From the NCBI GenBank assembly GCA_009103225.1, contig RHPI01002823.1, positions 195,104 through 259,103 on the forward strand: a stretch of DNA of 64,000 nucleotides, given 5' to 3'. Below the pieces are notes generated by a model. The model did no database searches, was not told the DNA's origin, and saw only the letters and a program-made list of their open reading frames with translations. This stretch comes from Chlorokybus atmophyticus (lineage: Eukaryota > Plantae > Mesostigma and Chlorokybus algae). The position numbers were made by a program, and so were the translations under genes. The first letter of the stretch is position 1; the number at the start of each line of letters is the position of its first letter. This document shows, in pieces, positions 17,239 to 46,029 of this stretch.

Positions 17239-18012
<774 letters not shown>

Positions 18013-19438: not shown

Positions 19439-21740
19439 GGGTAAATTGCCTAAAGTTGGGAATGTTTTGGGGTTTTAAGGGTATAGCGCACGGCTATTGG
19501 GATTTTGGCGGACATGTATATAAGTCAATTGAAGCTAAGAATATATGCTATGCAACGCATATTTTTTCATGATTTATGGAGCCTTGTAGCGTCAGTCATC
19601 GCGCGCCAAAGTAGGGTGTGTGGCATCAAAAAGTGAAAAGTCGATTTGCCCGAACTTGGTGACTCAAGAAAGGCTGTCAGCAGCCTTTCTCGAATCCTCA
19701 AGCACAGTCAGCGTGTGGGCAGCAGCCATTGTGAATCGGCTGATGTCTGGCGCTACAGGCTGGGCTGCGGGTGGCTGACAGCCTTGATAGGTGGTGATGG
19801 CCAGGCCTTTCCAGCTGCAGCCGTTTGGCGCCGCCAAACGACGCAGCTGGCGCCAGAATGCCTTGCACTGTTGCATGCAAGATTAGGCAGCAAGAAGGCG
19901 GCGACATAGCTCAGGGTGTAGGCAGCATGCATGAGGTGAGCAAGAGTGGGCGCTTGTATTGCATGCATGTCTATGTACAAGGTGTTGTTTGTTTGCTTGT
20001 TCCTAGCTATCTATGCTTGGCTGGCCGTGTGGTTCTGGCGCCTCTTCAATTTCCATCTCTTGCCCGCCTCCTTGGCGAGGTGGTTGGGCTGGGGGGCGAG
20101 CTGGTGTCCTCGGCAGTCCCACAGGGAGTTTAGAGAGTTGCTGTAGGTCAAGGGGTCAGCAGTGTACTTGTTCAGCAGCTCTCCAGCTTCCCTTGCTGTG
20201 CGCTCCCTCTGCTCTCTCTCTCTGTTGAATGCTTGTGCATGCTCAGCCTTCTCTCTCTCGGCTTCTGCCTGTGCCTCAGCCTTTGCCTGCCTGCGCTTCT
20301 CCTTCTCTCTCTCAGCCAGCATCTTGTTTAAGGCTCTTTCCTTATTCTTGGTTGCCAATTTCTCTGCCTTGTTGATTGCCTCCTGTGTTGCCTGCTTCTT
20401 TTTGTGTGCTGCTGCCTCCTTGCGTGCTTGCTTGGCTGCTGCCTGGTCTGCCTTCTCCTGGTCGATCCTCTCCAGTTTGTCTGCTATCTCTTGAGATGTG
20501 AGTAGCTCAGCTGGCTTGAATCCCTTCCTTCTCTTCGTTGGCTCCTTTGTGCTTGTGCCAGCCTCCTCGTTGTTGTCTTCATGCTTGTCCTCAGCCTCCT
20601 CTTGTATAGCTGTTAGCAGTGCAGACAGGCCAGGAGGGGGAGGGGCCTCTTCTTTGTCGGTGAAGTACTTGTCGCACACATGCAGGTCCAGAGGCCACAA
20701 CCCACAGGCGCGGAAGCCATTGATGATGTTGGGGGCAGAGAGACCAGCATAGTAAGGTGCCACTAGCATGCTTAGGAACTCCTTCCGGGAGAGGTCATAC
20801 TAAGAGCGCTCATCGTTTCTCCTTTGGTATTCTTTCCTGTAACACCCCTTGAAGGGGGGAAAACAAGAAATGTCTAACACTTGCAGTCTGTGTGTAGTGT
20901 GAGGGGGGAGGACGAGGATGTGAAGGCCATGCTCTTGTGCGTAGCGTATCATGCTCACATTGTATCTCCTAACGTGCCCGTCCACCATCAGCAGTGCAGG
21001 GTTGAAAGGGCGGCAACCTCCTGGCATCCACTCTGCTAGCTTCCTGATCCACATCTTAGAGATCTCTATTGTCATCCAGGCATTTTCCTGGCAGTAGAAC
21101 ATGGCTCCTGGCACGCTGAAGGCTTTGTTGTCAGCTGTCAACCACTGCCCCTTGACAATCACCAACGGTGGGGCAGCCATTCCAGCACCGGTAACAGCAC
21201 ACATCATGGTGATATGTTCTCTGCTTCCATTAGCTGTTTGAGCCCATTTGGCACCACTGTGCATCACAGGTGTGTATCAGTCTCTGCTTGTAACATGCAT
21301 AGCTCAACATGCTAACATTGCTTACCATTTACAAATGATTCTCTCATTGTTGTTAGCAGTGTCTGGCTCGATGCCAACTTTGTCCGCACTTATGATCCTC
21401 TCTGGCCCAATCCCCAACTCGTCAACAGTTTCTGCTAGCAGGCGAAAGTATGGGTAGACTGCATCCCTCCTGAAGCTCACCCTCCTAGACTTGTCCAGGT
21501 TCTGCTTTCCTGCTGACTAGGTTCTGTCTTGCCTGAAAAAGTCTACACCACTTTTAGCCAGGTACTCCCCCTTTAAACATCTGCTTCCTTGGATCACTGG
21601 CTAGCCTTTTGCCAGCCTCTACACATATTTCTCACCAGGTAACTCCCCTCCCCCATTTGTTGCGTTGAATGACCCACTGTGCCAGGTCTGTTTCTTCCTC
21701 TTCTGTAAAGAGTGGAGGTGCACCAGTGCCTCTGCATTGC
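19439..21740 (-). mobile_element. pogo-like (Tc1/mariner superfamily, DDE_1) DNA transposon, 5'-truncated
   Basis: Transposase remnants on the minus strand. A putative terminus TA|GGGTAAATTGCCTAAAGTTGGG lies at 19437-19460. I found no matching opposite terminus. Confidence 0.7.
20011..21735 (-). pseudogene. pogo-like DDE transposase pseudogene
   Basis: PPLFTEEEETDLAQWV (CENP-B-like HTH), YFRLLAETVDELGIGPERIISADKVG, REHITMMCAVTGAG...PPLVIVKG, ALLMVDGH, LPPHTTHRLQVLDISCFPPFK, NIINGFRACGLWPLD. In-frame stop at 20800-20802 plus further stops/frameshifts upstream. Confidence 0.88.
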
Positions 21741-21813
21741 ATATACTTGTGTGAGAACCCTTGCATTATGCTCGGTCTACACGCACATTATTAGCAGCAG
21801 GGTGTGCAAGCAG

Positions 21814-24800
21814 ATCAAGCTATATGTCGGCCAGCGTCCATTACAGTACGATGCGGGTCATGTTGAACCGGGGAGTTCGATTCAAGATGCGCACATGCCT
21901 GATGCTGAAGGATTCCTCCAGGAGACACACGCACAGCAGCAACAGGAGGAGGAGGAAGTGAACGAGGGCTTTCGATGTGTGCGTGTGCCTGAGAAACCTG
22001 TGGCACGCCAACATGGAAGTGGAGGCGTCCCTTCGCACGCGTCGGAATCCAGGTGGTATGGCTCGGAGCATGCTCTTGCAGTGGCATTCGTGCAGTGCAA
22101 CAACGACCAAGGCCTGTCGGCCTCCGACATGGGGCGGATCATCAAGTGCATCCGAAATGCACACTTCCTGACGGAAGAGCTCCAGTGGGAGACCGGTGTG
22201 CATGTGGCCAGCTACCTCCGGACCACGATTGCTTTCTCTCAGTCTGAGGTGTGTTCACGGTGTGCGGTGCATGTGCTTCAACCATCGGAGCCATGTTACA
22301 TATGCACATGCGAGTGTGCTGCCGTATCAAAACTACGTGACGGCTGACCTGCGCAAGCCTGGAGACCCTGAGGATCAGGACATCTGCGTCACATATATGC
22401 CGGCCAAGGTCTGTGACATGCAGTACCTAATGCAGTATCGATGCAGTATCTATTTTGAGGCCAGCATAGTAAGTAATGCTCTCGGTCGGAGCAGGTATGG
22501 CTCGCGCGGTTGTATGGCAATCCACATGCCGCCAATGGCTTCAATCTCCAGTACACTGCTGACGAGCACAGCTTTGGCCATCCTTCCACGGGCGATTGGT
22601 GGAAGGATGTGGAGGTGGATTTGAGGAGAGAGGTGGGGGAAGCGTCCTACTTGGCGCCTGCCATTCTGTACAGTGACAAGACCACGCTGGACAGCGCGGG
22701 CAAGCGCTCTGGCTACCCTCTGATGGCATCGCTTGCCAACTACAGCTGGGACATGTATGCTAGCAACATGGGGGTTGTTATAATAGCGCTTCTGCCAGTG
22801 GTTCACGCAGTGGCCGAGCATCCCACCTGGGCGCAGGGCAAGGAATCGTTCTCCATTCGGAAACGTGAGATTTTTCATGACGCTTTGAATGTAGTGTTAG
22901 GGGATGTGAAGCGGGCGAGTTGGGAAGGTCTGCAGCTCATCGACCCGAATGGCATCGAGCGTCGTGTGTTTCCCGCGCTTGCCAACTACATCAGCGATTT
23001 GCAGGTAGTGGGCATGAATGGTTGTAACCGGATGCAGCCCGCCAGCAAACAGTGCATGGAGGATGTTGTCAGTAGAACATCTGAGTTTGTCGTGTTGTAG
23101 GAGACTGCCACACTCGCACGCACTGTGTCGGGCAACCAAACACGACATCCTTGCGATGTTTGTCTCGTCACCAAATCAGATCTGTTGGAGATGGATGAGG
23201 ACCGGGAATTGAGAACCGAGGCCTTCTACACACCAGCAATACGTCAGCTGCGGGCGGACCTGCATAGCGGTGTTAGGAATGCACGCCAGACAGCCAAGGC
23301 TTTCAAAGAGCAGCACTCCATGCATGTCGAGGAGGTAATGGTCAAATTACCGGCATTCGTGAGGATGAATGGCTTTCCGTGAAACCAGGCAATGTGGTTT
23401 GGCAACAGAATGCACTGTGGGGTTGGCGACAGTCGCGGGTGCCGGGAGCTGACTGCTACTCTCGTCTTGCCCCTGACGCAATGCATGTGCTGGGAGGCAT
23501 CATTGACCACCTGCTTGCTGCTGTGTACGACGCCGCGAAGGAACGAATGCGTCCATCCACGAGACAGATTCTGCAGGCCAGGCACGTCTTTGGTGTTGCT
23601 TTCGTGTTGAACACAAAAGCCAACAACACGTGCTCACGAGCAGATGTGCACAGGCTGAATGCATGCAAGGCGACTCTGCGGGTTTCGCACTTCAAGGCAC
23701 CCACAAGCACAGTAGATTTCTTCCTGTCCAACCACTCCTTGCAGGTGGTGGAGAAAGTGGCGGTGCTGCAGCTGCTGCCGCTCCTCGCAGACGGTTTGCT
23801 GCTCGACAGTGAGGGCAACGATTTCTTCACCATTGCTGCCGCATCGCTTGCCCTATGGAACAAGAAGTTGCTCAAGGCGCATGAACACACAAGAGAGACC
23901 CTGACCACAGCCGACAACGAGCTGGCTGCCTTCAAAGCTGCAGTGTTGCATCCGCTACTGTCGTCATATTCTGCACAGAAGTCAGGTTGGAAGATCGAGA
24001 AGATGCATCAGCTCACTCATTTTGGGCCGGCAATTGTGGACAGTGGACACCCAGATTGGTTCAGCGCCAACCGCATGGAGCAGACGCACGCCCAAAATAT
24101 CAGACGGTGGGCGCGTGGTGGCAACAACCGGGACTACCAGGCACGTATCCTGAAGGCATGGAGCTGTGCGGAATATGTGAGAGAGGATGGCATGGTCGTG
24201 GATCCCGAGATGCGCTCGGTCATGGCGCAGGCGCGGCAGCAGTGCTGTAATGTCATGGAGAAGACGGACAAGTTGCTACGGATGGATGTGCTGACAAGGA
24301 GGGAGTCCAGCCCGTACTGGAGCGGATCTGCGCGTAGCCGCCAAGTCGCCTTGAAGACTCCATTTGCCGACAAGCTGCCTGCCACCCTGGACAGCTGGTT
24401 GAGGAGGGAACAACTGGAGTTGGCCGACGGGTGGCGTGCTGTTCGCGTGGTGAACGGAGGCGCAGCGGTGTACATGACATCAGGAGTCAGCATGGCGCGC
24501 GCAACTGGGATGTTCCATGGGCGGCCTTGTTTCTCTACACTTGAGTTGGAAGGTGATGAGGACGGTGTGAACGTGACGTGGTGGGCTCATGCACTCCTTT
24601 TTCTGCGCGTGGTGGTGTGGGGTGGTAGCGGCGAGCGCGTGTGGAAGGAGGTCGTGTTTGTCCGCTGGTACACGAAGCTGGATGTGACGAGCGACACAAA
24701 GTGCATCGCTCTGGAATGGGAAAAGCGTCGAGGCGGTCCACATCTCGATGTCGTGACTCTGGAGCAAGTAAAAGGCATTGTCCAGCTGCTCCCCATGTTT

Positions 24801-24866
24801 GACAAGGACAGCGCCCGTGTACAAGAGGGCAAGTATTGGGTGAACGTTCACTGCACTTCCACGTGA
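21814..24866 (+). CDS. Plavaka-family transposase (CACTA/Mirage-related), spliced, first exon(s) missing
   Basis: HPSTGDWW, AILYSDKT, SGYPLMASLAN, REIFHDALNVVL, DPNGIERRVFPALANYISDLQE, HPCDVCLV, LAPDAMHVLGG, WKIEKMHQLTHF, NRMEQTH and C-terminal VFVRWY match the Plavaka motif order. GT-AG introns at ~22250, ~22410, ~23007 and ~23336. One acceptor (~22330) reads CAA instead of CAG. Confidence 0.88.
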
Positions 24867-25065
24867 CACATGTACTTGTCTCACTACTCTCAGTTTGGAG
24901 CATATCAGTCAGTTAGGCATTGCTGATCGTATGGTAAAACTTTTGCATGTGGACATGTACAATACCGGGCAGCTGTCACTGCACAACTGTCACCACAATC
25001 GAATGTGCCATGCAACATTCAAGAATCAGTCCGCCGCGTGGCATTAAGCATACAGTGCACCACAC

Positions 25066-26794
25066 TCAAGCCTCATAGTTCCATGACACATGAGGGTAGT
25101 CACAGCGCATATCCATTGTTTCAAGCATGAGACGCCCTATGCAATCCGCCATTGCGGGAGGAACTGCATTCGCTATGGAAACGGCCGAGGTCATCCATGG
25201 CACTCTCAGCGCTGTTTGCCACGCAGCAATGCCGCCCCTGGTGCTTGGAAGGCCATAGACCGGGTACATCTGCTGTGGCGCGTTTGATGTCACGATTGTC
25301 TTCTTCGCGCTAGCGGACAGGTGCGGCGATAGCAGTCCAACTGCTTTGCCCGCGTGCGAGCAGCGTGCTGGTGGGGTAGCTACCACTGGCTGTGTCTCAA
25401 ACAAACGGTGTCGGAAAGTTGATAGGCCAAACATCGTGCCACAAAGGGACAGATTGGGTCTGAATGAGGAAGCTGCTCCTGGCACATTCTCAATCACAAA
25501 CTTGACCTGGCTTGCAAGCAGCAGACGTCGGACGAGCGGTATCATATCCTGGTGTCTCCAGGATGTGCCATGTGCCGCCCGTTGAGGTGCCCGGATAGCA
25601 CCTGAATAGGCATGGCATGGTGGACTGGCCCAGATGAGCTCGTACTCGCTCAGCTCTCATGCACTCAGGGTGCATACATCGCGGTGTATGAAGGGCAGCG
25701 GGTACTCAGAGGAGGGACTTATGTCCATCCCGGTCACGTTAAAGCCTGCGTGATATAGACCGACACTGGCACCGCCACCGCCGCAGAATAGGTCGAGTGC
25801 CCGTGGTCTGCGTGTGCGTCCCAGCTTGTTGTCAAATGGCGTGTATGTGGTCAAGGCTGGCCGTGGTGCTGGCCAGGGACTAACAATGATGCCGTCCGGG
25901 CTTACTTTGCGACTGACGTTCTCCCCTCCGGCGCGCAGAACATGGCGTGCCCCGTCAACTGATGTGTACGCGAATACGTTGTGCCCTTTGAAGTTGATGG
26001 TTTGTGGTCGATCACCGTCATCGAATACTATACGGTGCTGCCCTGCAAAGACATTTTCCATTGCACCATGCATATATGATGCGTCCTCAATCTCGCACGC
26101 CACGAAGCGATGCTGACCTGACGCTTGCTTGAATGATTCCACAACGCCCGCATACCATTCCCCATCCAGCGGCCAATGCACCATGACACTCACACCGATC
26201 AGCTGCTCGCATCCCAACTTAACTGCGTTCCGCAGCCGATGCAGTGCGCTGTCCAACGGTCGATGGTCTGCCTCCTCTACAGCGGCCAGGGGATGGAATT
26301 GCCCACGCCCACACCGTGCAAGACTGCTCTGAATGCGACCACAGCTTTAACATGCATGAAATAAGCATACGCCCAACATAACATGCAGTGATACGTCGCG
26401 GTCCACTCTTGTGGATTACCTCCACAGCATCCACCACCTGTCCACTAACCACATGTCCCGGTGTTGTCCATGTGAAGAAGCGCATGGGTTCCCCTCGCCA
26501 CTCGAAGCATGAGCGCGAGCACGATTCGCACACGCACTGCACGCAATGGAAAAACTCGGGTTCCTTGCACAGCACTTGGCCGAGGCGGCAGCCAAACACG
26601 TCGACATTGTGTGTGGTGTGATGCCAGCAAGCAGCACTAAAACCGTGGCACACTGTCTGCACTCGCTGGCATTCTGTCAAGTGTGCTCGCATTTGCTGCC
26701 TACGGCCATTGGCACATACGTACGCATTGCATTGTGGGTACTCCAAGCATGGTCTCCTAGGTGAGGGTGATTCAACTGCTGCCGCCGACATCAT
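25066..26794 (-). pseudogene. Tudor domain + phage/bacterial-type cytosine-5 DNA methyltransferase fusion, spliced, one in-frame TGA
   Basis: Motif I LDLFCGGGG (~25770-25798), IV WASPPC, VI IENVPG, LCGTMFGL, VIII RHRLFET and X ANAVPP. Upstream Tudor IGVSVMVHWPLDGEWYAGVVESF...HRIVFDDGD. The reading frame continues directly across TGA at 25657-25659 (TLSA*ELSEYELIWASPPC). Introns at ~26425-26333 and 26117-26043. Confidence 0.88.
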
Positions 26795-27411
26795 GCAAAA
26801 TAGGAATCGGCACGGCTGCCCACAAACTGAGCGAGACTTTAGGGTATGGGCATCAATTAAGGGTTGCCAGCTTACGAACCCTAAATGGGTCAAACTTCAA
26901 GTGAAGCACAACTGTACCTTATACGCTATTGCAGTACCATGCATGATACTTCATCAACATGAATGGTACTCCATCTGTTAATGGTACTACAGTACAAGGA
27001 TACTCGCATACTACCACGATCGTAGAGTAATACTGTGCTGTCATGCCATGGAACCCAGAGCGCTGTCCAAGTTTGTCGCTGTCAACCACGCTCCAAACCA
27101 GCGAGGTATGCAAGCCATGCACTGACTCATGCGCCGGGCAGACATCATACACATGTACAGCCAATGCTTCTAACAACAGCAGATCTCTGGTGCACCATGC
27201 ACCATGCTGCAATTATACATGTACCTACATGGTTCACAGGAAGCCAACACAAAACTACAATACATGCACAATTGGCATCAAGGCGGGGGCCAAATCACCG
27301 CCGACACGTTGGCGTCTTGCATCAGGCGTGGCGACCAAAACGGGTGAGGTTGCTTGCAGAATGGACACGCTTGTAGATTCTTTGATTTATTTGCCACAGT
27401 CTTCTGATGTG

Positions 27412-30400
27412 CTATGATGCAGACATGGCACATCGCTTTCTTGCAACAGGGCGTCTCCCCATCCGCTGGAGGGGTGGCTCTTCAATGCGACAAATCAGCA
27501 CACATGGTGCACGCGGGTGTGCAAGCTGCCTCTGCCACCAAACTCTGTTATCGCGTCGCAGGCGTAGCGACTCCCATCTGAGTGGCGCAGCATAACGCTC
27601 CACTGCCTCCTCGATCACCTGACGCCCATCTGCCGCCATACACCACCTGCTGGTCTTGGTGGTCTCGTCCAGCATGCGTTTATCCAGGCCCTCGACATGG
27701 CTGTCGTCACTCGTGTACTCCCCCGCATCGTCATTTTCTTCGAGCTTCCGCAGAATAAGCTCGATGTGCCGTATGACATACAGCCACTGCCAGCCAAAGC
27801 ATGCCAAGTACAGCTCAAATGGTTTTACTTGCCACCCAGTATGTTTGCTCAGGTAGTGGCACACATCTCGACCCGGATTAGTCGACATCGACAGGTACAT
27901 CTGCTGCAGCAGGTTGAAAGTCTGCTCCGCATATAGCTCTTGCACATTGCCGGGTTGCTGCGGCAGCAACAACACCATCATATCGAGGACGGCAAGGGGC
28001 AACAACGTACTACGGATGGCCATATCGTGTATGGGTTCCAACCACGGCCAATCCCAGAGGTCTGTTTAGACCGCATCTTCCGCGTTTGCTCCCACTTATT
28101 GCAAACTTTCGTCACCCACCTCGAGGCATGCCGCATGCGGTGATGCAGCGCGTCTTGGGCGTACTGTAGGGTGATCAACTCCTTTGCACTACGAGTCAGC
28201 CCCTCAAAGCGTCTGCGCGTTGGTGCTTTGAGCTTAGGCAGCTCGTGCCGCACCGGCTGTCTTTCTGGACGATGCTGAGCAGCCACTTGACGCTGTAAAC
28301 CCGCCTGTGCCTACTCAGAACACACAGTCAGCCCCAGAAAGGCTTCAAGGCGATGTGCTTCTTCTAATGTTGTAACGATGCCTCACCTTTCCTTTTTTGA
28401 TCCTGTCAGCGTCTTTTGTTCTAACAACCTTCTTCTTTTTTTTTTTGTCACCCTGCACATCCTGGAAGGCGCTCTCCGTGGCACTGTCACTCAGAGCAGG
28501 TAAGGCGTTATCTTCTTGCTCCACAGCCTTGCGCTTGTTGGTTGCCTCCCGTTCCTCCACGACCTCATGTTGCTTCATGAGGTCGAGCATGAAGCCTTTG
28601 TCTTTCAGCGCAGCTTTCAGGACACCTCGATCAATCTCTTTACCAACAAGACAGGCTGGGATCAATGTGGCAAGCTTAGAGGGAGAGGGCGAGCTACAGC
28701 TGCTTCTTGATGGAGATGCCTCCGGATGGTCAGAGTGCGGTGGCAAGTGAGTCTCCGCGGCAGGAAGGGAGGGTGCTGAATTGGGATTGCGAGCATGTGG
28801 CTGTGGTTGAGGGGAGGCAGGATGTGCAGAACACTCGGCTGCTTCTTGCCTAGCACACGAAGGCAAGGCCTGAGGCGTTGGCGCAGCATTCTGGGTCACA
28901 GCCGGTGGTAGCGGGGAATTGGCAACGCCTTTTCGCCACTCTCCGATCAGGTGTGTTACCTCCAATGGCACTTCATGCATAGGCCACGACCACTGTTCGG
29001 TGCTTGCAAACTTGAGGAGCCAAAAGTGTGCTTCTGGCTCATCAGGAGCAGTGTTGCCCACCACCAGGACTGAGTTGGGGGCTTCTTTATTTCCAACCCA
29101 AACTGCGCTGCCGGGCCGTGGCACCCATTCCCCATGCTCGCGCTGAACGATCACGCAGCCAATCAACAAGCCCAGCTTGTTGGCAAACATGGTCATCATG
29201 GTCATGTCATGGTCATCATAATCTGCAGGTGCTTGACGTACACATCTTTTCTCCGCACGATCTGTCGCACCTTGGCCATGGCTAGGTCAATGTTGCAGTT
29301 GACATCAGCCAACATGGTCGCAGGCAGTTTGTCGTAATACTGCGCCATCTCTCCCGCGGCACCAGTGGCTGTGCAGAAGTCTAGGATTCTGCTCGCCACA
29401 CCTGCATCGACAGCCTTGGCGGTGATCTTGCGGAGAGTGTGCCCCCTGCCGTCGTCGTCCATGGTGTCCAGCATGGCCCAAAATCTGCTCGAGCTGGGGC
29501 ACTTGTGATCATTCAGGACACTTTGCGCTATGGATGGCCTGGCGCAAAATACACAATGGTAGAAGCAATTACCATCCGTTGGCGCATTGAAGTGGTCCCA
29601 TGAGGCGAGCTGGCCACCTAGCATGACTGATGGCCGTATGCGGGTTGCGGCCAGCTCCTCTGATGACTCGCTGGCAGGTGGTGACCCCTGCTGCATGCGC
29701 ATACAGCACTCACATGGTGTGTCCAACTGTGGACGGCAAGAGTCACAGTGACTGATAAAGTACCTGAGATTGGGGCAGACTGCCGGCTTCAACTTGCAGC
29801 GGGTGGGGTAAGGTAGGTGCAGAAGCCACATCGATTGTTGCATTTTGCTGTGGTCTCGCCGGTGGCGGCAAGAAGGATTGTTGCCCCGCAATCACCGGTG
29901 CTGCTCGTGGAGGAGATGGCACTGCATGAAGGACTGGTGCCGCGGAAGGTGGTTGCGCTCTGGCTGGGAGGGGAGCAGGAGCTGCAGGTGAGACCACTTG
30001 TGCATGCAGCAAGGGGGGCTGTATACAGGACCCAGGATAAGATGGCTCACAATGTTGCAAAGGACGAATATAAGCTTATGCAGTGCCTGACGCATTGTTA
30101 CCAAGGCACGAGCATAAAAGACAGCGACTTACCTCAATGGCCCGTGGGTTGCATGGAGCAGGGGAAGCCATGGGGGCTGACAAGGTGGTATTGGCTGCAC
30201 TCTCCCTGCCACCCTCCATGGCAGACTCGTCACGGAGCTCGTGAGCCATGGGCACATCATGCGCCACTGCCCCAATGGACATGTCGGGATTCAACAGGCC
30301 AACAGGCATGTTAAACTGATGCCGCATTGCCGCCGCGCTCATCGGCAAGTGGGATCGAAGGACCAGTTGCTGGGATTAAATCCAGGCTTGCATAGGAGCT

Positions 30401-31300
30401 CCAACAGGATCTAGTGCACTGTGGTGCTGTCAACCAATCACATGTGGGTTAGCTGCATGCTTGCAACACTGCAATTGCAATAGTTAACTGCGTCACACCG
30501 TCATCAGTTGGTTGCTTCGAACAGTCACCTGCGGCATTGCTGGTTGATGCACGAATGATTGCATGGACTGCGTCATTGCTGGTTGATGCACTATTGGTTG
30601 AATGCCGGACGAATGGCCACGCGCTCCTGTTCTCAAACCCAGCCAATTTCGTTCGGCACGCGCGCGCGACTTCGCACGCTCACGCACATCCTAGCATGCA
30701 AAGGTAGGCATGCATTGGGGCCGACATTGCAGTCAACATGCACAGCGAGATTGGCAACAACATACCGCCGCCCAGCTCTGTCTATCTGCTCTTGCTTCCG
30801 CAATGTCGGCTTGACTCTAGGGTGGGTATGGGTGAATAGTGGAGGCCTGCAGCCACGCTACATATATCACATGGACTGCGCTAAAAAACAAATTGCTCTT
30901 GCAAGGAAATGCATGTGACTGTTGAGCGTACCTCTGCATTCCTTTGTGCTTGTTCCCACATCCGCAATTGGTTCCGCATGGTTCTGACAATGGGGCTCCA
31001 AGGACTGCAGCTCCTGATCCACTCCTTGTTGCAGAAAGCGAGCCACCAAGCAGCTCTCTGTGTGAAGATGGTATTTAATGGCTTGCCTGTTGGTTTGTCC
31101 AATGTTGGTGATGCATGTTGGACAGCCCCATTGCTGACGCCTGCCATGATCCATCACGTGGCGACCGGTAGTAGCTGGCTTCGTTGCTTGAACTCTTACG
31201 ACCACAACTTCTCGCAAGATGTGCCACGCCGCCGCCGCCGCCGCCGCCTCCTCCGACTCCTGGTCCTCCGCCTCCTAGTCGAACCCAGGCCCATCAAGCC
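27412..31300 (-). pseudogene. Large spliced gene with OTU-like cysteine protease domain, copy 1 (frameshifted)
   Basis: FNAPTDGNCFYHCV (~29560-29590) matches the OTU catalytic DGNC motif. It continues into ORF 28345-29205 once a 26-bp insertion at ~29195-29220 is removed, then via an intron into 27978-28286 and by frameshift into 27412-28041. The 5' end is uncertain. Confidence 0.65.
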
Positions 31301-31750
31301 TGACATTCGACCCGTCATCGACCTGGTGCCCCTGCGTGCCATCATCCGGCCATCAATGAAGCGTGTTTGGGTGAGTGCATGCTAACTCCCATTTGGGCTG
31401 ATCGAGCAATGCCTCTGTCGTACCATGGATGGTACGACAGAGCCATTGTACGGCAATCGCTGGGGTTGGACGAGAGATGCCTCTGTCGTACCATAAATGT
31501 TACGACACAACCATTGGTAACAATGGTTGTACGAAGCATGCATGGCACGAATGCATAAGTCGTACCATCAACCATAGGAGCAAGGACGCACTACAAGTGC
31601 GACTCTAGTGCGGGACTCTAGACGTTCAAAACCGCCTCATTTTCGTTTTCGCGCCTCATACATTCGGGCGGGCCAACCGGCGGCGGCAGCGTTGGAGGCG
31701 GCAGCGCCACTTACAGCTAAACAGGCGGCACCCGACTATCAGTTGGAGAG

Positions 31751-34300: not shown

Positions 34301-36502
34301 AAGATTACAGGTGGCCTCAGCCACGACAGTCTAAATTAGTGTCCTCAGGTGCACGGCCGTTGCCAATATGTAGTCGGCCGGCAGGGAAAACATATTGCGA
34401 CAACCTTGCAGGTCGCAAATTTAATTGGTTTCGAAGTGATTGCCACGTACTTGTGTCGGGTGAACATGTTGGCTGCGCTGCTTCCAGTAGTAATGATGTG
34501 GACGAAGCCGGGGTCGTTCATCATTATGTACAAGTAAACTCGATGGAGTTTACGTATGCCCATCAGTCGGCATGCATCAACCTAGGTCTTCAATTGCTTT
34601 ATACGGCCTTAATATAGATGGACTCATTGCATACACTGGCATTTGTCTGCACGATGTTCATGTTTTGTGCATAGTTACATGACAAACTGTGCAGATGGCT
34701 TGAACTTCGACCGTTTTCGAAGTTTGATTGGAAACTTGAAGTCAAGGCCATCGCTGTCATACTGCATGATGCCAGCCGCGTGCCCTCACATTCGCGCCGC
34801 AGTGCTCGCCCCGATCGATCGCCGTGGGATCAACATGAATGACAATACGATACTCCCATACAAGTTTTTTGTATCCTCGTACCATACACGATGTTTGACG
34901 TCGTAAATTGTTTGGATCGGGGGCTGTTGGTGGAGGACGTCCCCTTTGCATGCGATGTCTTCAAGAGACAATTTCCCTCAAGTTGAGGGATTTTGTACGG
35001 CAATTGCCTGCATGCTTACAGGTGAATTAGTTGCGCTATAATTAACATGTATATAATTGTTGCTGCAGTTACATATGAGTGTTTGTAGCCTATGGTGGGC
35101 GTGCATGACAACGCATTTTGCCTCATTAACGGCAATGACCATATTGTTGGCGCATGCCTGCACAAAAACATTATTTTTCGGATTGGACGTGAAGGGGCCA
35201 CAGAGCAAAAACGATTTGACGACTTGGTGTGGAGGATGGGGAACAAGTATTGTCATTCAACGAGTGGAGCGTTGAGATTGGTAATGTGTACTGCAGCTAT
35301 AATTTGTTAATGTATTTAGCCCAGCATGGTCTACATGCCAGCCACTCGTCTGTGTGGAATCACGGGTGTCGTCCTTGTGTGTGTCAAGGGAAAAACGTAA
35401 ACATTCGTGATGACCCGTTGTATGGGATATGGACTTGCCCTCGATGTGTCTTAGGTGAGGGTTGCATTGGATATCCTGTGCGCTATATAGTGTATGCATC
35501 ACGGGTCTTCATGATCTCGCAGGCCCATCTCAGAACCATCATGACCATGTAATCCTCGTGTATGGCAAGCAGTGTCGCTTGATGCGCTGTCTCTGTTAAT
35601 AGATCGCATCACGCATGATGCAGCTGCTGAAGCAGCTCATGATGCCCCACCAGCTGATGGGGCGCTGCCGCGCAATGCTTTTAACCGCGCGTGTGCGTTG
35701 CATGAGACGTATGATGTCAATTTGTCTGAGTACCTTAATCTCAAGACGCCTTGATGTCTTAAGCCAACAACTATGATTGTGGTTGAACTTTTGCAGCGCC
35801 CTGGTAATCTGGTGTTGGTAAGTACTTGGGCATGTTGTCTTTGAGCAGGGCCAGGATGTAGATGTTGATGATATAATCATTGCAGTGGCCACCCAACATG
35901 GCACACGTCGTCGCAATATGTTTTCCCTGCCGGCCGACTAAATATTGGCAACGGCCGTGCACCTAAGGACACTAATCTAGACTGTCGTGGCTAAGTCCAC
36001 CTGTAATCTTGATACAGGGACCTAATTGTACTTTCGTTACTATCAGGCCCTTTTTGTTATAACTTAGTCTTTAACAGTTGACTATGCCTAACTAACAGGC
36101 GCATGTTAGTTACCTATCACGCCCTAAAAGATGACTTTATATAATTCACAGGCACCTGTTAGTTACACATCAGGCCTTAACAGGTGACTTCATATAATTT
36201 ACAGGCACCTGTAAGTTACACATCAGGCCTTAACAGGTGACTACACCTAATTAGCAGGCACTCGCAAATTACACATCAGTATTACTTAGGTGCCTCAGCC
36301 TATGTGACAGGCACCTGCAAATTACACACCAGTCCACCGCAGGCGACTAAGCCTAATTCACAAGCACCAACTAGGTAATTATCGACAAAATAATGCATTT
36401 ATTAACAACTGAAGGTGATTAATGCCTAACTGTCGTCATATGTATTTGCATAGCTTGACTACACGCGACTGTCACTGACTGCCAGCATTGTTATGTGCCT
36501 GT

Positions 36503-39500
36503 TGTTGAAGGACTAGCATGCACATGTAGCTGAGGCAAGCATAGATACACAGAGACAGAGCTACCGCCACCAGAGCATACACAAGTCACATCACATTCAT
36601 CTATTACAAGTTGTCCGATGGTTCTTATACCAGCCAGCTACACACACGTCTACGTTTGCAAGCACTGCGTAAGCTATACTCAGACTTTTGACGCACTCAA
36701 AGCTGTGTTGTCTTCCTTACAACCAGAGCTTTCCAACAAGCTCTGACACGCCTAATATGAGTAAGTATACGCGGAGATACGAAGCAGTTAGTAAGGCTCC
36801 AGTCTGGAGTCCGGAGTCTGGTCCGACGATGCCATCTTGCTAAGTCCGGACCTAGTGCTCGTCCTTACGACCTTCTACTCCTGTGTGGAGGGTCGATGCT
36901 GATCGTATGTAGGAATACTCTCAACACTCCCACGCGAGCAGCTTGACCTCCGACGCTTGCTCCTGTAGTCAAACACATATGCCAAGTCCTGCACAACAAG
37001 TCTTGAACTTGAGCGGTGACAATGACTTTGTCATGAAGTCCGCCAGCATGCCCTCAGTGTTGCAGTACTTGAACTCCACCTCCTTCCTTGTGACTCTGTC
37101 ACGCACAAAGTGATGCATGACATCAATGTGCTTCGTCCTTGCCGAGGCAATAGGGTGCTTCAACAACTTTATGGCTCCTTGGTTGTCACAGTTGATGACG
37201 ATGCACGCCATGGGGTGCTCCAAGTCTGCCATGAGCTTGCGAAGCCAGAGTGCCTCCTTCACTGCTGCTGCCGCTGCCATGTACTCAGCCTCTGATGTAG
37301 ATGCTGCTGTTGTTGGCTGCAGCCTGCTGTTCCAGCTTACCACGCCTCCATTTAGCTTGAAAACGTAGCCTGTAGTGGACCTCCTGCTGTTGAGGTCACC
37401 AGCAAAGTCCGAGTCGCAGTAGCCCTCCAACTCAGTGCTCCCGCTCCCAAACTTGATGCCAACTGTTGCGCTCCCAGCAACATAGCGTAGTACTCCCTTT
37501 GCTGCTCTCCAGTGCTCCATGCTCGGTGCAGACATGTAGCGAGCAAGTACTCCCACAGCATGTGCAACATCGGGACGTGTGCACACTGCCAGATAGAGCA
37601 TGCTGCCTACCAGCTCACCATATGGATACTGAGCCTTGTCGAGTACCTCCTCATCCTTTGCCTTGATGAGGGCAGTGCCAAGTGCCAACGGTGTGGTCTT
37701 GGTCTTCGCTTCAGTGAGCCCAAACTTGGTGACGAGTCTTCTCACCATCTGCTCCTGACTGATCTTGATTGTGCGAGCCGCCCTGTCGCGCTCAATCACC
37801 ATGCCAAGGAACCACTTGGCCTCTCCAAGATCATGAATTGAGAATGCTTGCTGCAAAGCAAGTTTCGTCTCCTGCAGGTGGTGCACCTGCCTGGCGGTGA
37901 TGATGATATCATCAACATACACGAGCAGCCAGACCTTGTTGTCTGCATGGATGAAGAGCCCAGGGTCTGCAGAGGATGCGGTGAAGCCAAGTGCCTCCAG
38001 CTCCTTGGTGAGCTTGATGTGCCACATACGCGGTGCCTGTCGCAGCCCGTACAGTGCCTTGATCAGCTTGCACGCTGTGCCTCTCTCCCCTTCTTCATAT
38101 CCAGGTGGTTGCTCGATGAAGATCTCCTCCTCCAGCTCTCCGTAGAGGAAGGCAGTCTTCACATCCAGGTGATGCAGCTCTAGGTCTTCAGCAGCAACCA
38201 TAGCTAGCAGTGCACGGAAGGTGGTATGCTTACTTGCAGGTGCAAACACTTCGTTGAAGTCCACACCTTCCTGCTGCAAGAAGCCCTTTGCCACCAGTCT
38301 TGCCTTGTAGCGCTCAATGTTGCCCTGACCATCACGCTTCACCTTGAAGACCCATTTCACTGGAATGGTCTTCACTCCTTGCGGTAACTGCTCCAGTGAC
38401 CAAGTGTTGTTGGCATGGAGTGACGCAATCTCCTCGTCCATAGCACGCTGCCATTGCTCCGCATCTGGTGCTAACAATGCCTCCTCGTAGGTGCTTAGCT
38501 CCTCATGCTGCACACTGGCGACGTGTGCCTTGTGTAGGAAGTCAGGTGCCTTTTCCTCCCTCACTGGGTATCCTCGAGCTGCGTGCTCCTGCTGCAGGTG
38601 CGACTGCTTGTCTGCTACAGTGGAGTCCTGCTCACCCTTATCGTCGATGATGGCCTTGCCTGTAGCCTCCACTGTTTCAGGAAGCTCCGGCTGTGCTTCA
38701 TCTTCAGGAAAGAAGCCTGCTTCTGGTTGTGATAATCCCTCGTGGAAAACCACCTCTCTACTCACGATCATCTTCTGAGTGTCCTCGAGCAAGATCCTGT
38801 AAGCCTTGGAACCTGGTTCATAGCCAACGAAGATGCCCTTCTTGCTGACCGGCTCCAGCTTGTGCCTGAGCTGTTTAGGCACTAGTGCATATGCCGTGCA
38901 TCCAAACACACGCATACCACTCACATCTGGTGTGGCTCCATAGAAGTGCTCCCACGGAGTCTTCTGCTCTGAGCTCACCGGAGACCTGTTGCGGATGTAG
39001 TTGGCAGTGAGTACCGCCTCCTTCCACAAACTGTCTTCCATCTTTGTGTCGTTGAGCATAGCTCGAACACGCTCCAAGAGTGTCCTGTTAAGGTGTTCAG
39101 CTGCTCCATTCTGCTGCGGGGTGTAGGGTGCCGTTGTCTCGTGGCGTATGCCCTTGCTGGCGAAGAACTCCTTCAACTCCTTGTTGATGTACTCCCCTCC
39201 TCGATCACTCCTCATTGCCTTCATCTTGTTGCTAGACTGCGTCTCCAACAAGGCCACAACTGTGCGCACAGCTCCAGCAACTTCTGACTTCAGCGTCAAC
39301 GGAAAGATGATGGACAGCTTGCTGTAGTCGTCGATTAATGTAGCAAAGTACCTGGCCCCTCCCTTCGCCACAATGCGCATAGGGCCACAGACATCCATGT
39401 GCACAAGCTCGCAAGGATGCTGACTGCTTGAAGAGGATGATGGGAATGGCATAGCATGCTGCTTTGCAACCAGGCATGGTTCACAAAGTGCACCTGATGC

Positions 39501-41410
39501 ATTCTTGAGTTCTTCTGTGCTGAGATGGATGCCCTTGACCATCTTCTCAGCGACAAGGCGAGTGAGGTTGACGTAGCTGAGATGCCCGAACCTTCGATGC
39601 CACAATGTTGGCGACTCCTTGTCCTTCACCACCATGGCTTGAATGTCAATGTCCTGAGGGTGCTGCTCCACGTGGTAGAGCCCTCCCGGATCAGTGATTC
39701 CAACCATGTGCACGGCCCCATCAAGGATGACTGTGCAGCCACCCTTCCGAAATAGGATCTCCGCGCCTAAGCGCTCCGCAACCCTCACAGAGAATAGACT
39801 CGCAATAGCCTTAGGAACATGCAGGACGTTGCGTAACAACACCTCGCGTAGTGTGTTACCAACCTTGCACTGGAGTCGTACGTTGCCAACTCCGTCGGCC
39901 ACCAGTACTTCACCGCCGAAGCCCGCCACCTTGATTGTGGACGTCAGCTTCCTGTAGCCCTCCATCACCTCCATGTTTGGTGTGAGATGACGATCGCAGC
40001 CAGAGTCCACCACCCGGAAAGCTGTGCCTGCCCTCGAACTGGATGCAGTGAAGGCGACATGTTTCTCCTTGTGTTGGTGCTCGTTGCCGCTGTTGCTGGT
40101 GCTTGCTCTAGGTTGCCCCTGTTGTTTCTTCCTACAGTCCTTCACAATGTGCCCCTTCCAACCACACCAGTGGCATGTGAGGTCTTTGAAGCGAGGATTG
40201 CCCGGCTTGTTGCCCTTATTCTTCTCTTCATGGTTGCTCTTCTTCCCATGCTTGTTGGTGTAGAAGGTCACGGCATCAGCTTGCTCGTCCTTCTTCATCA
40301 CCCTCTGCTCCACGGTGAGCAGCTTCGGTAGTACATCGTCCAGCGCCAGCTCTGATGACGATGTCTCCAGCAGTGTTGCAACGACCTCGTACTCTGCTGG
40401 TAGCCCTGCAACAACAGCCAGCACAACCTCCGTCTCCCCCATGTTGTGGCCGACGTTGATGAGGTCCGCCCACAGCTCTCTCTCGCGCGCAACATACTTT
40501 GTGATGGGTTCTGCTGCCTCCTTCCAAAGTGCGCTCAGCTGCTTGCGTAGATGCAACTTTCTGGCATTGTTCTTGGCTCTGAAAACGGCTGATAGCTTTT
40601 CCCAAGCTTGTCTACCATCTTCACATGCAGTAAGCATGGGAAAGTGATGCGGTTTATTATTCAACACAAGCAAAGAGTGTGCTTCTGCTGAATGCGCTGA
40701 CCACACAGTGTTCGCTCCTGGTGTTGGTGGTGGTGCCTTCGGATCAACGTACTTTCACACCTTCTTGTGGATGAGCAAGGCCTTCATCTCCACGCACCAT
40801 GTGTTGTAGTTGTCGGTGTCCAGCTTTGCAATCTGCCCCTTGTTGTAGGTCGCCTCCATTTCTGTCGAGCCTGCCTTTCTTGCAGTTGACACCCAAGGCT
40901 TTGCTACCAACAAGCTACCGCAGTGGAGAACTACTATGCACACAAGCTAGTTTCACACTCCTCAAGCGTAGTGTGGACCCATAACCTGTTGAAGGACTAG
41001 CATGCACATGTAGCTGAGGCAAGCATAGATACACAGAGACAGAGCTACCGCCACCAGAGCATACACAAGTCACATCACATTCATCTATTACAAGTTGTCC
41101 GCTGGTTCTTATACCAGCCAGTTACACACACGTCTACGTTTGCAAGCACTGCGTAAGCTATACTCAGCCTTTTTACGCGCTCTAAGCTGTGTTGTCTTTC
41201 TTACAACCAGAGCTTTTCAACAAGCTCTCACACGCCTAATATGAGTAAGTATACGCGGAGATACGAAGCAGTTAGTAAGGCTCCAGTCTGGAGTCCGGAG
41301 TCTGGTCCGACGATGCCATCTTGCTAAGTCCGGACCTAGTGCTCGTCCTTACGACCTTCTACTCCTGTGTGGAGGGTCGATGCTGATCGTATGTAGGAAT
41401 ACTCTCAACA
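36503..41410 (-). mobile_element. Full-length Ty1/copia LTR retrotransposon (Osser-like PBS)
   Basis: 424-bp LTRs TGTTGAAGG...CTCAACA at 36503-36926 and 40987-41410. 5-bp TSD CCTGT (36498-36502, 41411-41415). PBS GGTTATGGGTCCAC at 40986-40973 (half-tRNAiMet type). About 9 LTR mismatches counted by eye. Confidence 0.98.
36969..40859 (-). pseudogene. copia gag-pol (gag, zinc knuckle, protease, integrase, RT, RNase H) with one premature stop
   Basis: CHWCGWKGHIVKDC, VVDSGCDRH, GAG-pre-integrase LWHRRFGH, VHMDVCGP, RSDRGGEY, QQNGAAE, YKARLVAKG, LDVKTAFL, LLVYVDD, YCDSDFAGD, RTKHIDV. ATG at 40859; TGA at 40755-40757 (KKV*KYVDP, probably TGG>TGA). Confidence 0.95.
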
Positions 41411-41639
41411 CCTGTGCTGTGTACATGTACCTGAAATGTGTACAGTGTCTTTCAGTCACTTGCCAAGGCTTGTAGTTCGATTATGTGACTCGAGCAGTTC
41501 TGTTGTATATCATAGGGATGCAAGTATTGATATGCATGAGCATAATGACGATTGACTGAGCTGGTTTAAGATGCACAACACTCAGTCACAAGAGCCTTGT
41601 AGCTGTGTACACTACCAGCTAAACGGACTACCAACTGCG

Positions 41640-43467
41640 CTACAGCTCCTCTCCATCATCGCTTTGCTCGTCATTACGGAACAAAGCACCACGCGCTGGG
41701 GCCTGTGGAGGAGACGCCGGAGCTTGCTCTTCCTCCTCAAACGGTTGTGCCAGCCAATTAAATGCCGCTTCTGCCTCAGCGAGCGGGTCACGAGCTACTG
41801 TCTCTTGCGACCGGCGCCGATTGGGATCTTTCAGGTATTCGACACAAGATGCAGTGCGGCGTTTCACAAGGGTGAATGGCTGGAGGGCTGCGTACCGTTG
41901 CCTCATCTCCCGCTTCATTGACATGATTATGGTGTTGATTTCGCTGAGGTACTCTTCATGTGTGTCTATGCTGGCAGCTAGGAGAGGGTCTCCATCCTTG
42001 CCCTTTAGGATGCGCTCCACCTGCGTAGTTTACAGGCATGTCTTAGTGGCATCGAAAGCCACTATTCACTGCAACGCGTCTGCAAGCCTGTAGTTTGGGG
42101 CTACAGCATTCCTGAATTGCTAATGATGGAGTTCAGAGTGCTCACCGTAAGCAACAGGTATGCGAGGTGGTTGACTGTCAGCTGCCGGCGACCAGGTGTA
42201 GTGACGGCGTAAGACCAGCATTGCACGATCATTTGCCAGATTATGGGATTGCCCCATTCATGGATGTATCTCCTCCGCTCCGGGTCTGCAGTGTCGGTCA
42301 CCTCAAATCTCCGCCATGACTTGTCTGCGACAGTCATACCGACAAGGCATTAGTCACGAAATAGATAGTTCAAGTTGAGCCTGCACCAGGCTAGAATAGT
42401 GCCTGTGACTTACTTTGGAGCGCGTTGCGCATCTGGGCTTTTTGGGTCTCGGGGTCCATTAGGGCGTCGATGTGCCTGATTGAATCGGTTACAATAGGCG
42501 AGATGAGTACGTGTGTATGGAGGCTGAGTAAGAAGGCAGTGTTGCATAGCAGATATGGTGGTGAGGGACCCAACTCACTTGCGCTTGTTGCTGTTAAACA
42601 GTGTCCACTTGTACTCCTTCTCAAGGACATGCTTGATCTTGGTGACGTTCTCAGACCGGACCTGCGTAGCTTTCTTCAGGGCGACACTCCAGTGGAAGGG
42701 GCACTCCTTGGGAGTCCAGTACACCTCATAGAACTTGGCCGCATCGGCCTCGTCGTCATGGTCGAAGCCAACTACCTGTCACGGGCAGGTTGGTCAGTGT
42801 CACGGTGCAGTGCGGTCATGAAGCATTCACAGCACCTGACACATGACGTTACGAATAGTGTCCTCCTTGGGATAAACGTGGCTCTCTACCCAGTGGCCGT
42901 TTATGATTTCAACGACGGCATCTCGCAAATGCTGTCCACAGAAGAACAATCCGTTACACACATACACACAGTGTCACAGTGTCACACAGTGCTTACCTCG
43001 TTGCCAATCTTCCACTTGCTTGGGGAAGGGTTGCTGACGGCCGAGGTTGCCACGTCACGGCCAAATGCGTTTGGGTTGGGGGTTCCAATCGACCCTCTGC
43101 AAGCACAACCACATGAGTCATGCTGCCAGCCATGAAAGATGCAACCCTCACAGTTGCAAAAGAAGAACAACGTGCACAGTGTATCCAGAACGCATGCAGT
43201 GAGTCACTGTGCTAGTCATGATAGAAGCAAGCATCCAAGTTAGAAGTTGAGCAAGAAGCAACGTGCACAGTGCATCAAGAACGCATGCAGTCTAGCTTGC
43301 CCTTGCGACTGCGGTGTCAGGTGGAGTTGTTGTGATGTGCTGGGCGTTAGCGCGGGGTCTTGCTGCGATTGGTTGGCGACGGTTGCCTGGTTGAACACTG
43401 GGGGCAATGTGGACAACTGGCGCCGACCTCCACGACGAGGTGCACTTACGGATGGACCACGAGGCAT
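41640..43467 (-). CDS. Uncharacterised multi-exon cargo protein, copy 2
   Basis: Reverse-complement copy of 31751-33578; ORF-track peptides are identical or differ by 1-2 residues. Confidence 0.65.
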
Positions 43468-43899
43468 CTCTCCAACTGATAGTCGGGTGCCGCCTGTTTA
43501 GCTGTAAGTGGCGCTGCCGCCTCCAACGCTGCCGCCGCCGGTTGGCCCGCCCGAATGTATGAGGCGCGAAAACGAAAATGAGGCGGTTTTGAACGTCTAG
43601 AGTCCCGCACTAGAGTCGCACTTGTAGTGCGTCCTTGCTCCTATGGTTGATGGTACGACTTATGCATTCGTGCCATGCATGCTTCGTACAACCATTGTTA
43701 CCAATGGTTGTGTCGTAACATTTATGGTACGACAGAGGCATCTCTCGTCCAACCCCAGCGATTGCCGTACAATGGCTCTGTCGTACCATCCATGGTACGA
43801 CAGAGGCATTGCTCGATCAGCCCAAATGGGAGTTAGCATGCACTCACCCAAACACGCTTCATTGATGGCCGGATGATGGCACGCAGGGGCACCAGGTCG

Positions 43900-46029
43900 A
43901 TGACGGGTCGAATGTCAGGCTTGATGGGCCTGGGTTCGACTAGGAGGCGGAGGACCAGGAGTCGGAGGAGGCGGCGGCGGCGGCGGCGGCGTGGCACATC
44001 TTGCGAGAAGTTGTGGTCGTAAGAGTTCAAGCAGCGAAGCCAGCTACTACCGGTCGCCACGTCATGGATCATGGCAGGCGTCAGCAATGGGGCTGTCCAA
44101 CATGCATCACCAACATTGGACAAACCAGCAGGCAAGCCATTAAAGACCATCTTCACACAGAGAGCTGCTTGGTGGCTCGCTTTCTGCAACAGGGAGTGGA
44201 TCAGGAGCTGCAGTCCTTGGAGCCCCTTGTCAGAACCATGCGGGACCAGTTGCGGCTGTGGGAACAAGCACAAAGGAATGCAGAGGTACGCTCAACAGTC
44301 ACATGCATTTCCTTGCAAGAGCAATTTGTTTTTTAGCGCAGTCCATGTGATATATGTAGCGTGGCTGCAGGCCTCCACTATTCACCCATACCCACCCTAC
44401 AGTCAAGCCGACATTGCGGAAGCAAGAGCAGATAGACAGAGCTGGGCGGCGGTATGTTGTTGCCAATCTCGCTGTGCATGTTGACTGCAATGTCGGCTCC
44501 AATGCATGCCTACCTTTCCATGCTAGGATGTGCGTGAGCGTGCGAAGTCGCGCGCGCGTGCCGAACGAAGTAGGCTGGGTTTGAGCACAGGAGCGCGTGG
44601 CCATTCGTCCGGCATTCAACCAATAGTGCATCAACCAGCAATGACGCAGTCCATGCAATCATTCGTGCATCAACCAGCAATGCCGCAGGTGACTGTTCGA
44701 AGCAACCAACTGATGACGGTGTGACGCAGTTAACTATTGCAATTGCAGTGTCGCAAGCATGCAGCTAACCCACATGTGATTGGTTGACAGTACCACAGTG
44801 CACTAGATCCTGTTGGAGCTCCTATGCAAGCCTGGATTCAATCCCATCAACTGGTCCTTCAATCCCACTTGCTGATGAGCGCGGCGGCAATGCGGCATCA
44901 GTTTAACATGCATGTTGGCCTGTTGAATCCCGACATGTCCATTGGGGCAGTGGCGCATGATGTGCCCATGGCTCAAGAGCTCCGTGACGAGTCTGCCATT
45001 GAGGGTGGCGGGGAGAGTGCAGCCAATACCACCTTGTCAGCCCCCATGGCTTCCCCTGCTCCATGCAGCCCACGGGCCATTGAGGTAAGTCGCTGTCTTT
45101 TATGCTCGTGCCTTGGTAACAATGCGTCAGGCACTGCATAAGCTTATATTCGTCCTTTGCAACATTGTGAGCCATCTTATCCTGGGTCCTGTATACAGCC
45201 CCCCTTGCTGCATGCACAAGTGGTCTCACCTGCAGCTCCTGCTCCCCTCCCAGCCAGAGCGCAACCACCTTCCGCGGCACCAGTCCTTCATGCAGTGCCA
45301 TCTCCTCCACGAGCAGCACCGGTGATTGAAGGGCAGCAATCCTTCTTGCCGCCACCGGCGAGACCACAGCACAATGCAACAACCGATGTGGCTTCTGCAC
45401 CTACCTTACCCCACCCGCTGCAAGTTGAAGCCGGCAGTCTGCCCCAAACTCAGGTACTTTATCAGTCACTGTGACTCTTGCCGTCCACAGTTGGACACAC
45501 CATGTGAGTGCTGTATGCGCATGCAGCAGGGGTCACCACCTGCCAGCGAGTCATCAGAGGAGCTGGCCGCAACCCGCATACGGCCATCAGTCATGCTAGG
45601 TGGCCAGCTCGCCTCATGGGACCACTTCAATGCGCCAACGGATGGTAATTGCTTCTACCATTGTGTATTTTGCGCCAGGCCATCCATAGCGCAAAGTGTC
45701 CTGAATGATCACAAGTGCCCCAGCTCGAGCAGATTTTGGGCCATGCTGGACACCATGGACGACGACGGCAGGGGGCACACTCTCCGCAAGATCACCGCCA
45801 AGGCTGTCGATGCAGGTGTGGCGAGCAGAATCCTAGACTTACGCACAGCCACTGGTGCCGCGGGAGAGATGGCGCAGTATTACGACAAACTGCCTGCGAC
45901 CATGTTGGCTGATGTCAACTGCAACATTGACCTAGCCATGGCCAAGGTGCGACAGATCGTGCGGAGAAAAGATGTTTACGTCAAGCACCTGCAGATGACC
46001 ATGTTTGCCAACAAGCTGGGCTTGTTGAT
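43900..46029 (+). pseudogene. 5' part of the OTU-like gene, copy 2, truncated by gypsy LTR
   Basis: FNAPTDGNCFYHCV at ~45626-45660. Lacks the 26-bp insertion of copy 1. Homology stops at CTTGTTGAT|TGTGTCGGG. Confidence 0.7.

Follow-up and report, generated by a model that had tools for sequence, protein, structure and literature searches.

How genomic parasites manipulate host silencing, or imitate it, can be seen in mobile elements that carry their own epigenetic enzymes. In algae, DNMT-carrying retrotransposons have been described from Symbiodinium and Klebsormidium, namely SymbioLINE-Dnmt, SymbioDIRS-Dnmt3 and KnitGypsy-Dnmt3, and the same study cites DNMT-encoding DNA transposons of marine viruses (PMC5890265). 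The giant Plavaka elements of red algae carry the accessory genes PAG1-3, of which PAG2 joins a PF01555 N6/N4 methylase to SET (10.1101/2025.02.11.637652), DNA transposons of fungi are known with TET/JBP (PMC12730594), and in Amoebidium giant repeats have been found that are flanked by Plavaka (PMC11244446). The cargo known so far consists of DNMT3-type domains in retrotransposons, and of either TET/JBP oxidases or an N6/N4 methylase plus SET in Plavaka elements.

Here we analyse a stretch of 64,000 nucleotides from the streptophyte alga Chlorokybus atmophyticus (GCA_009103225.1, contig RHPI01002823.1, forward-strand positions 195,104 to 259,103), which we refer to as the window and whose own numbering is used throughout. 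An original prediction placed within it a Plavaka-type transposon that carries a Tudor-fused, phage-like cytosine-5 DNA methyltransferase. Our analysis makes it probable that the locus is a decayed copy of a multi-copy transposon of at least ~12 kb, which moves by cut-and-paste and belongs to the EnSpm/CACTA-related Plavaka family, equipped with a three-exon accessory gene for a Cys/His-rich segment, a Tudor domain and a C5 methyltransferase. Like the Dnmt retrotransposons (PMC5890265), this would be an algal mobile element encoding its own C5 cytosine methyltransferase; whereas in those elements a DNMT3-type or related domain lies inside a retrotransposon polyprotein, here a DNA transposon would carry a separate gene with predicted introns, in which an enzyme of viral type is joined to a Tudor reader. 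With the red-algal elements carrying PAG1-3 and the fungal TET/JBP Plavaka elements it appears to share the transposase lineage, a multi-gene organisation of more than 10 kb and a cargo that modifies DNA or chromatin, but its cargo, a C5 methylase fused to a Tudor, differs from both the N6/N4 methylase-SET combination and the 5mC oxidases.

Results

The Plavaka transposase gene is located on the plus strand at 22510..24866, in three ORF pieces (22510-23100, 23125-23382 and 23379-24866). The first of these matches the Plavaka domain of Pfam, PF18759, with an E-value of 1.8e-23 and 83.7 bits against a cut-off of 26.3, which bears out the identity originally proposed. The pieces are split by a TAG at 23098-23100 and by a frame change near 23337-23409 that looks like a GT-AG intron, and an ORF at 21712-22347 may represent the N-terminus of the transposase. 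For the 495-aa transposase ORF, a homologue search of a large protein collection returned none within its length range. Directly to the left of the gene lies a pogo/Tigger-like DDE_1 fragment (20011-21480, minus strand; PF03184, E 2.1e-18), which may have disrupted the left end of the element. Further upstream, a long 8-nt tandem-repeat array occupies 17242-18100 and accounts for the strong GC and AT skew of the 16001-18000 bin. The transposase, ending at 24866, and the methylase, whose stop codon is at 25068-25066 on the minus strand, are convergent and have their stops 199 bp apart, and the predicted spacing of about 200 bp thus agrees with the measured one.

Overall, the Tudor-methylase gene runs from 26794 to 25066 on the minus strand and consists of an exon rich in Cys and His, followed by a Tudor domain and a C5 DNA methyltransferase of compact build. 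A single reading frame (26328-25066, minus strand) spans Tudor, linker and methylase, with no intron at the boundary between Tudor and methylase. The Cys/His-rich putative exon 1 (26420..26794, minus strand) starts with an ATG at 26794, contains 125 codons, ends at the donor GAG/GTAATC and is in a separate frame from exon 2. The two can be joined through a putative intron 1 at 26329..26419 on the minus strand, read from the sequence as GT..AG, 91 nt long and in phase 0, or through an alternative form of 145 nt with its acceptor at 26275. Exon 1 has no match in either Pfam or the ESM Atlas, and lies inside the repeated unit that is covered by contigs of public runs over 22500-28499. Exon 2 (26118..26328, minus strand) encodes the first half of the Tudor (…LIGVSVMVHWPLDGEWYAGVVESFKQASG) and is followed by a predicted in-frame intron 2 of 75 nt (26043..26117, minus strand; GTCAGC…TTTGCAG). 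Exon 3 (25066..26042, minus strand), assigned from its sequence and from phrog_363, encodes the second half of the Tudor (QHRIVFDDGD…), the linker and the C5 methyltransferase. The original description of a spliced gene is corrected here in that Tudor and methylase share one frame across an intron-free boundary, that the Cys-rich exon lies in another frame and needs a putative intron, and that the Tudor itself holds a predicted GT-AG intron (26117-26043).

In a phmmer search of the PDB, the Tudor has one significant match, 7DE9_A, with an E-value of 3.3e-5 over its first 40 residues. This structure is the Tudor of Arabidopsis RDM15 (PDS5C) in complex with H3K4me1 (PMC8184781), and such a best solved match agrees with the earlier assignment to the plant PDS5/MSH6 type. 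The alignment ends exactly at …SGQHR, which is where the predicted donor of intron 2 is found (CAG/GTCAGC in the DNA, followed 75 nt on by TTTGCAG/GG). Because 75 nt is divisible by three, the frame stays open with or without removal of this predicted intron; upon removal the protein reads …WPLDGEWYAGVVESFKQASGQHRIVFDDGD…. The residue numbers of RDM15 were transferred through the alignment, in which positions 21 and 28 of the 7DE9 chain are Trp616 and Tyr623. Both of these cage residues are kept in the query, and predicted splicing brings a Phe to exactly 18 residues past the cage Tyr, the position of Tyr641 in RDM15, compared to 43 residues if the intron is retained. Furthermore, with the intron removed, a D-D-G-D stretch supplies equivalents of Asp643 and Asp645, so that the Trp, the Tyr, an aromatic residue at 641 and the pair of Asp coordinating monomethyl-lysine all have counterparts. 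This RDM15-like spacing of the cage supports both the predicted intron 2 and a methyl-lysine-reading pocket. Judging from the kept cage residues and both Asp, the mark that the Tudor would bind is most likely H3K4me1-like. In contrast, the positions that contact H3R2 in RDM15, Glu647 and Gln654, are Pro and Gly in the query, and the query Tudor is fused to a methylase, whereas that of RDM15 belongs to a cohesin-associated protein.

Other searches with the Tudor were less informative. Pfam did not recognise it, a homologue search of a large protein collection gave none in its length range, and among leads carrying a family name the ESM Atlas returned only sub-threshold Tudor-like ones (at most 0.86). 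The second half alone has no match in the PDB, as the piece is too short, and a single-sequence AlphaFold model reached a pLDDT of 46, which is unusable.

The methylase carries, in one frame on the minus strand, motif I (LDLFCGGGG, 25797-25771), which forms the SAM-binding loop (FxGxG) and aligns within positions 45-108 of phrog_363, followed by motif IV (SPPC, 25626-25615), motif VI (ENV, 25491-25483, within IENVPG), motif VIII (RHRLFE, 25413-25396) and motif X (AVPP, 25167-25156). All five could thus be located in the compact C5 order that had been proposed, and the accompanying remark that a target-recognition domain is almost absent is borne out by the distance from motif VIII to motif X, which is just 76 residues. 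Over 40 aligned family members, the residues P12, C14, E56, N57, V58, R82, P166 and P167 are invariant, and the query has all of them; at motif IV it reads PCH, where the majority of the family has PCQ.

A premature in-frame TGA (25659-25657, minus strand) lies between motifs I and IV, and the pieces on either side of it were searched separately. On these pieces of a stop-split copy, Pfam PF00145 reaches only E 0.25 and 11.2 bits against a cut-off of 22, while it matches 27 of the 40 aligned family sequences at E <= 0.001. From PHROGs, phrog_363 ("DNA methyltransferase") matches both pieces collinearly, at positions 45-108 with 2.2e-10 and at 115-211 with 5.1e-7. Against the PDB, a profile of the methylase family finds M.HaeIII, M.HhaI, 3G7U, DNMT2 and DNMT1 at 1e-9 to 1e-6, through motifs I-VI only, and the bacterial enzymes are matched no worse than DNMT1 or DNMT2; the single methylase sequence gave no DNMT match there with phmmer. 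Neither a BAH, RFD, PWWP or ADD domain nor a chromodomain was found with the methylase in Pfam. Judged by these profile and sequence searches, the methylase is placed outside the canonical DNMT families (DNMT1/CMT, DNMT3/DRM, DNMT2 and DNMT5). The original prediction had likewise set it apart from canonical eukaryotic DNMT families, and the PDB searches show no closeness to DNMT1, DNMT3 or DNMT2.

Relatives of the methylase are numerous. An exhaustive HMMER search with its C-terminal piece gave 2122 relatives at E <= 1e-3, of which the best is only 45% identical, indicating that the query's own gene family is absent from the protein collection searched. By tblastn against phage genomes, 303 records were found (34-38% identity over 91% of the C-terminal piece, E ~1e-22), from phages of Mycobacterium (180), Streptomyces (52), Paenibacillus (28), Arthrobacter (22), Gordonia (8), Vibrio (7) and Rhodococcus (6); the matches are annotated as DNA methyltransferases of ~217-241 aa. 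IMG/VR holds at least 515 loci of the family, mostly on contigs of 40-60 kb. With the actinophage enzymes (phrog_363, e.g. Gordonia phage Yakult gp45 and gp82 of the Mycobacterium phages Pukovnik and Lesedi) the query shares the compact I-IV-VI-VIII-X order and the near lack of a target-recognition domain, but these stand-alone, intronless proteins of ~217-241 aa fall in another part of the tree.

The nearest relatives are P0001-P0004 (40-45% identity), followed by P0006, P0010-P0012 and P0017 (37-42%). On its 245-kb contig, P0006 has an RNA polymerase Rpb1 gene with an intein on one side and the gene of a family-B DNA polymerase on the other, and the 29-kb contig of P0001 also encodes Topo II, the small subunit of RNR, and U-box and MIP proteins; by gene content, both contigs look like those of giant viruses. 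In a quick maximum-likelihood tree of 91 sequences, the query and all long giant-virus-like forms are found in one clade (SH-aLRT 91 and 90), with the query as sister to the group of P0001, P0002, P0010 and P0012 (SH-aLRT 85) and three phage enzymes placed apart from it. We regard this grouping of the query with the giant-virus-like long forms as moderate and not decisive. As such, the likeness to actinophage enzymes that was first proposed holds at the level of the family, but the nearest relatives are on giant-virus-like metagenomic contigs and not in phages.

Several of these closest relatives also contain a chromatin reader. In P0002 (L009, 2028-3050), P0010 and P0012 (L007, 447-1616), an MBD is inserted between motifs VIII and IX, the usual place of target recognition, which could make for a maintenance-like enzyme, while P0017 (L008, 1639-2940) has an N-terminal zf-CW, a domain that reads histone H3K4me. 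P0003 and P0004 are tandem fusions, each with two methylase domains of the query's family. The readers of the giant-virus-like forms (P0001, P0002, P0006, P0010-P0012 and P0017) are MBD or zf-CW and never Tudor, and their genes have no introns and no transposase nearby. Could the locus then be an endogenised giant-virus fragment, with the transposase as an unrelated neighbour? The position of the closest methylase relatives on giant-virus-like contigs would fit such an origin. However, identity is a mere 45% at best, and the gene has predicted GT-AG introns and a plant-type Tudor; neither a Tudor nor the Cys-rich segment occurs in any of the 172 methylase relatives examined. Moreover, no viral hallmark gene was noticed among the ORFs scanned around the methylase, and the methylase is repeated together with the transposase, all of which makes a viral fragment very improbable.

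This repetition became apparent when Logan contigs of four public runs were aligned to 22500-28499; among the runs containing this stretch, none of RNA was found. The region is tiled by 125 (run X1) and 316 (run X3) short variant contigs of 90-100% identity, from two organisms, with single positions covered by up to 10-12 distinct contigs in X3. The depth of the main contigs, which is not a copy number, is even along the whole row of transposase, 199-bp spacer, methylase, upstream region and next gene, and contigs continue collinearly beyond 28496. As far as contigs can tell, such a pattern is the signature of one many-copy repeat made up of transposase, methylase and next gene. In run X4 (organism C), the few contigs of low depth cover the transposase and the neighbouring gene, and none lies over the methylase (25100-27699); related elements in organism C may be without it, although these contigs are very few.

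The contigs also inform on the state of the present copy. At 25659, the window has an A, resulting in the TGA, while all 14 covering contigs (3 from X1, 10 from X3 and 1 from X5) have a C, resulting in GGA for Gly; among the contigs covering it, this stop is private to the copy in the window. In 22500-28499 there are ~117 positions (~2%) where contigs differ from the window, and among the 40 of these that were listed, nearly all covering X1 and X3 contigs carry the other letter. At least four of the listed differences fall in exon 3, i.e. in the end of the Tudor and the methylase. These include 25206, where this copy has Arg and other copies have Gly, in a stretch that is conserved in the family as AMG(I)DW, as well as 25144 (Asp here, Glu in other copies) and a silent difference at 25345. 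With a TGA between motifs I and IV, and an Arg that replaces the conserved Gly of AMG(I)DW, this copy is, by its predicted translation, an inactive pseudogene which cannot make the Tudor-methylase protein. Compared to other copies, the next gene is also short of one base at 27470 and one at 28052.

Predicted introns and a reader domain of host type would also fit a host gene of the ordinary kind, by now decayed to a pseudogene, that is beside a transposon by chance. The many sequence variants, with as many as 10-12 contigs over one position in X3, are difficult to reconcile with this, as are the ~117 differences in 6 kb, the private stop and the location within an island of transposons, and we therefore give a host gene hardly any credence.

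If the methylase travels in a Plavaka element, it should be enclosed by the ends of that element. Upstream of it, the repeat unit includes a further accessory gene (27412..31300, minus strand), which is repeated together with the methylase and contains the motif DGNCFYHC; we did not retain an OTU identity for it, as it has no match in Pfam and just this motif. The right terminus of the element is at 34373..34404 (minus strand), reading inward GT-TGTCGCAATATGTTTTCCCTGCCGGCCGAC. The segment 29214-34404 recurs inverted, at 90-100% identity, at 35909..46003 (plus strand), where a second, partial copy of the right part corresponds to 34404-29214 and begins CGTCGCAATATG…. Similarity between the two stops sharply at 34404, at GT[T/C]GTCGCAATATGTTTTCCC…, beyond which the flanks are unrelated. 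In terms of common termini, one sharp end (34404) is thus shared with the inverted copy at 35909. The methylase lies between the transposase and this sharp end, and is therefore inside a real end of the element. The two copies of the right 5 kb point towards each other, a distance of 1.5 kb separating their termini, and the second is truncated at 46003. Inside this second copy, a Copia element with an intact ORF of 1245 aa is found at 36503-41410, and a third, solo LTR is present at 48972-49271. The subterminal stretches 31407-31516 and 33982-34246 contain palindromic motifs (…CTCTGTCGTACCAT…ATGGTACGACAGAG…) and 53-nt tandem repeats, which could be candidate binding sites for the transposase or an accessory protein.

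At the left side, when 15000-25000 was compared with the right terminus by k-mers and by scans allowing mismatches, neither a left terminus nor a terminal-repeat pair or a target-site duplication turned up. A candidate at 19216 was rejected as it falls in Copia-LTR-like sequence, and the end of the second copy, which reads CGTCGCAA, gave nothing convincing as a lead for the left terminus. Without a left terminus, the Tudor-methylase gene might also be a separately mobile or repeatedly captured module that adjoins the Plavaka transposase without being moved by it, for example inside another nested element or a segmentally duplicated block; the nested transposons all round it (the pogo-like DDE_1 fragment, Copia and the inverted partial copy) fit in with such a history. 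On the other hand, even depth and continuous contigs extend in two organisms from the transposase through both spacers to the next gene, and the Tudor-methylase gene has the transposase on one side and the shared 34404 terminus on the other, so that we consider a separate module unlikely. That the transposon brings its own methylase, as originally put forward, thus gains from the joint repetition with the transposase and from the position inside the 34404 terminus, while the left end and target-site duplication that would complete it were not found in 15000-25000. As such, the methylase as cargo of the Plavaka element is well supported but not closed.

Discussion

Transposons carrying epigenetic enzymes were already known, and the new part would be a Plavaka element with a Tudor-C5 methylase. 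In the literature, of which our search covered some of the journals, we found no description of a Plavaka, or of any eukaryotic cellular DNA transposon, with such a gene, in line with the original statement that no description of the combination was known.

So what would a transposon do with a methylase of this kind? In intact copies, the Tudor would dock on nucleosomes marked by methyl-lysine, most likely of an H3K4me1-like type, and would thereby tether a cytosine methylase of low specificity. The element could in this way write 5mC on chromatin bearing that methyl-lysine mark, be it on its own copies or on host genes, by which it might either tune its own expression or mimic host methylation. 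Splicing, histone binding, catalysis and a benefit to the element are each something we infer from sequence. That intact members encode an active, H3K4me1-guided methylase, which the transposon put together from an enzyme of giant-virus or phage origin and a PDS5/MSH6-type Tudor of its host, is a tentative proposal, which we put forward as a possibility while thinking it rather less than likely.

A DNA transposon with a viral-type C5 methylase and a reader of histone marks would add a writer aimed at chromatin to the cargo known so far, and would link three gene pools, those of phages or giant viruses, of host chromatin readers and of transposons. Although nothing but a fossil remains in the present copy, its family provides a reader-writer for testing that is compact and modular by nature. 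If the methylase is indeed guided as proposed, the chromatin of an early-branching streptophyte alga would receive cytosine methylation where it bears the mark, through a coupling of reader and writer that was made by a transposon, in parallel to the MBD and zf-CW fusions of its viral relatives, and the element could then contribute to the methylation patterns of its host.
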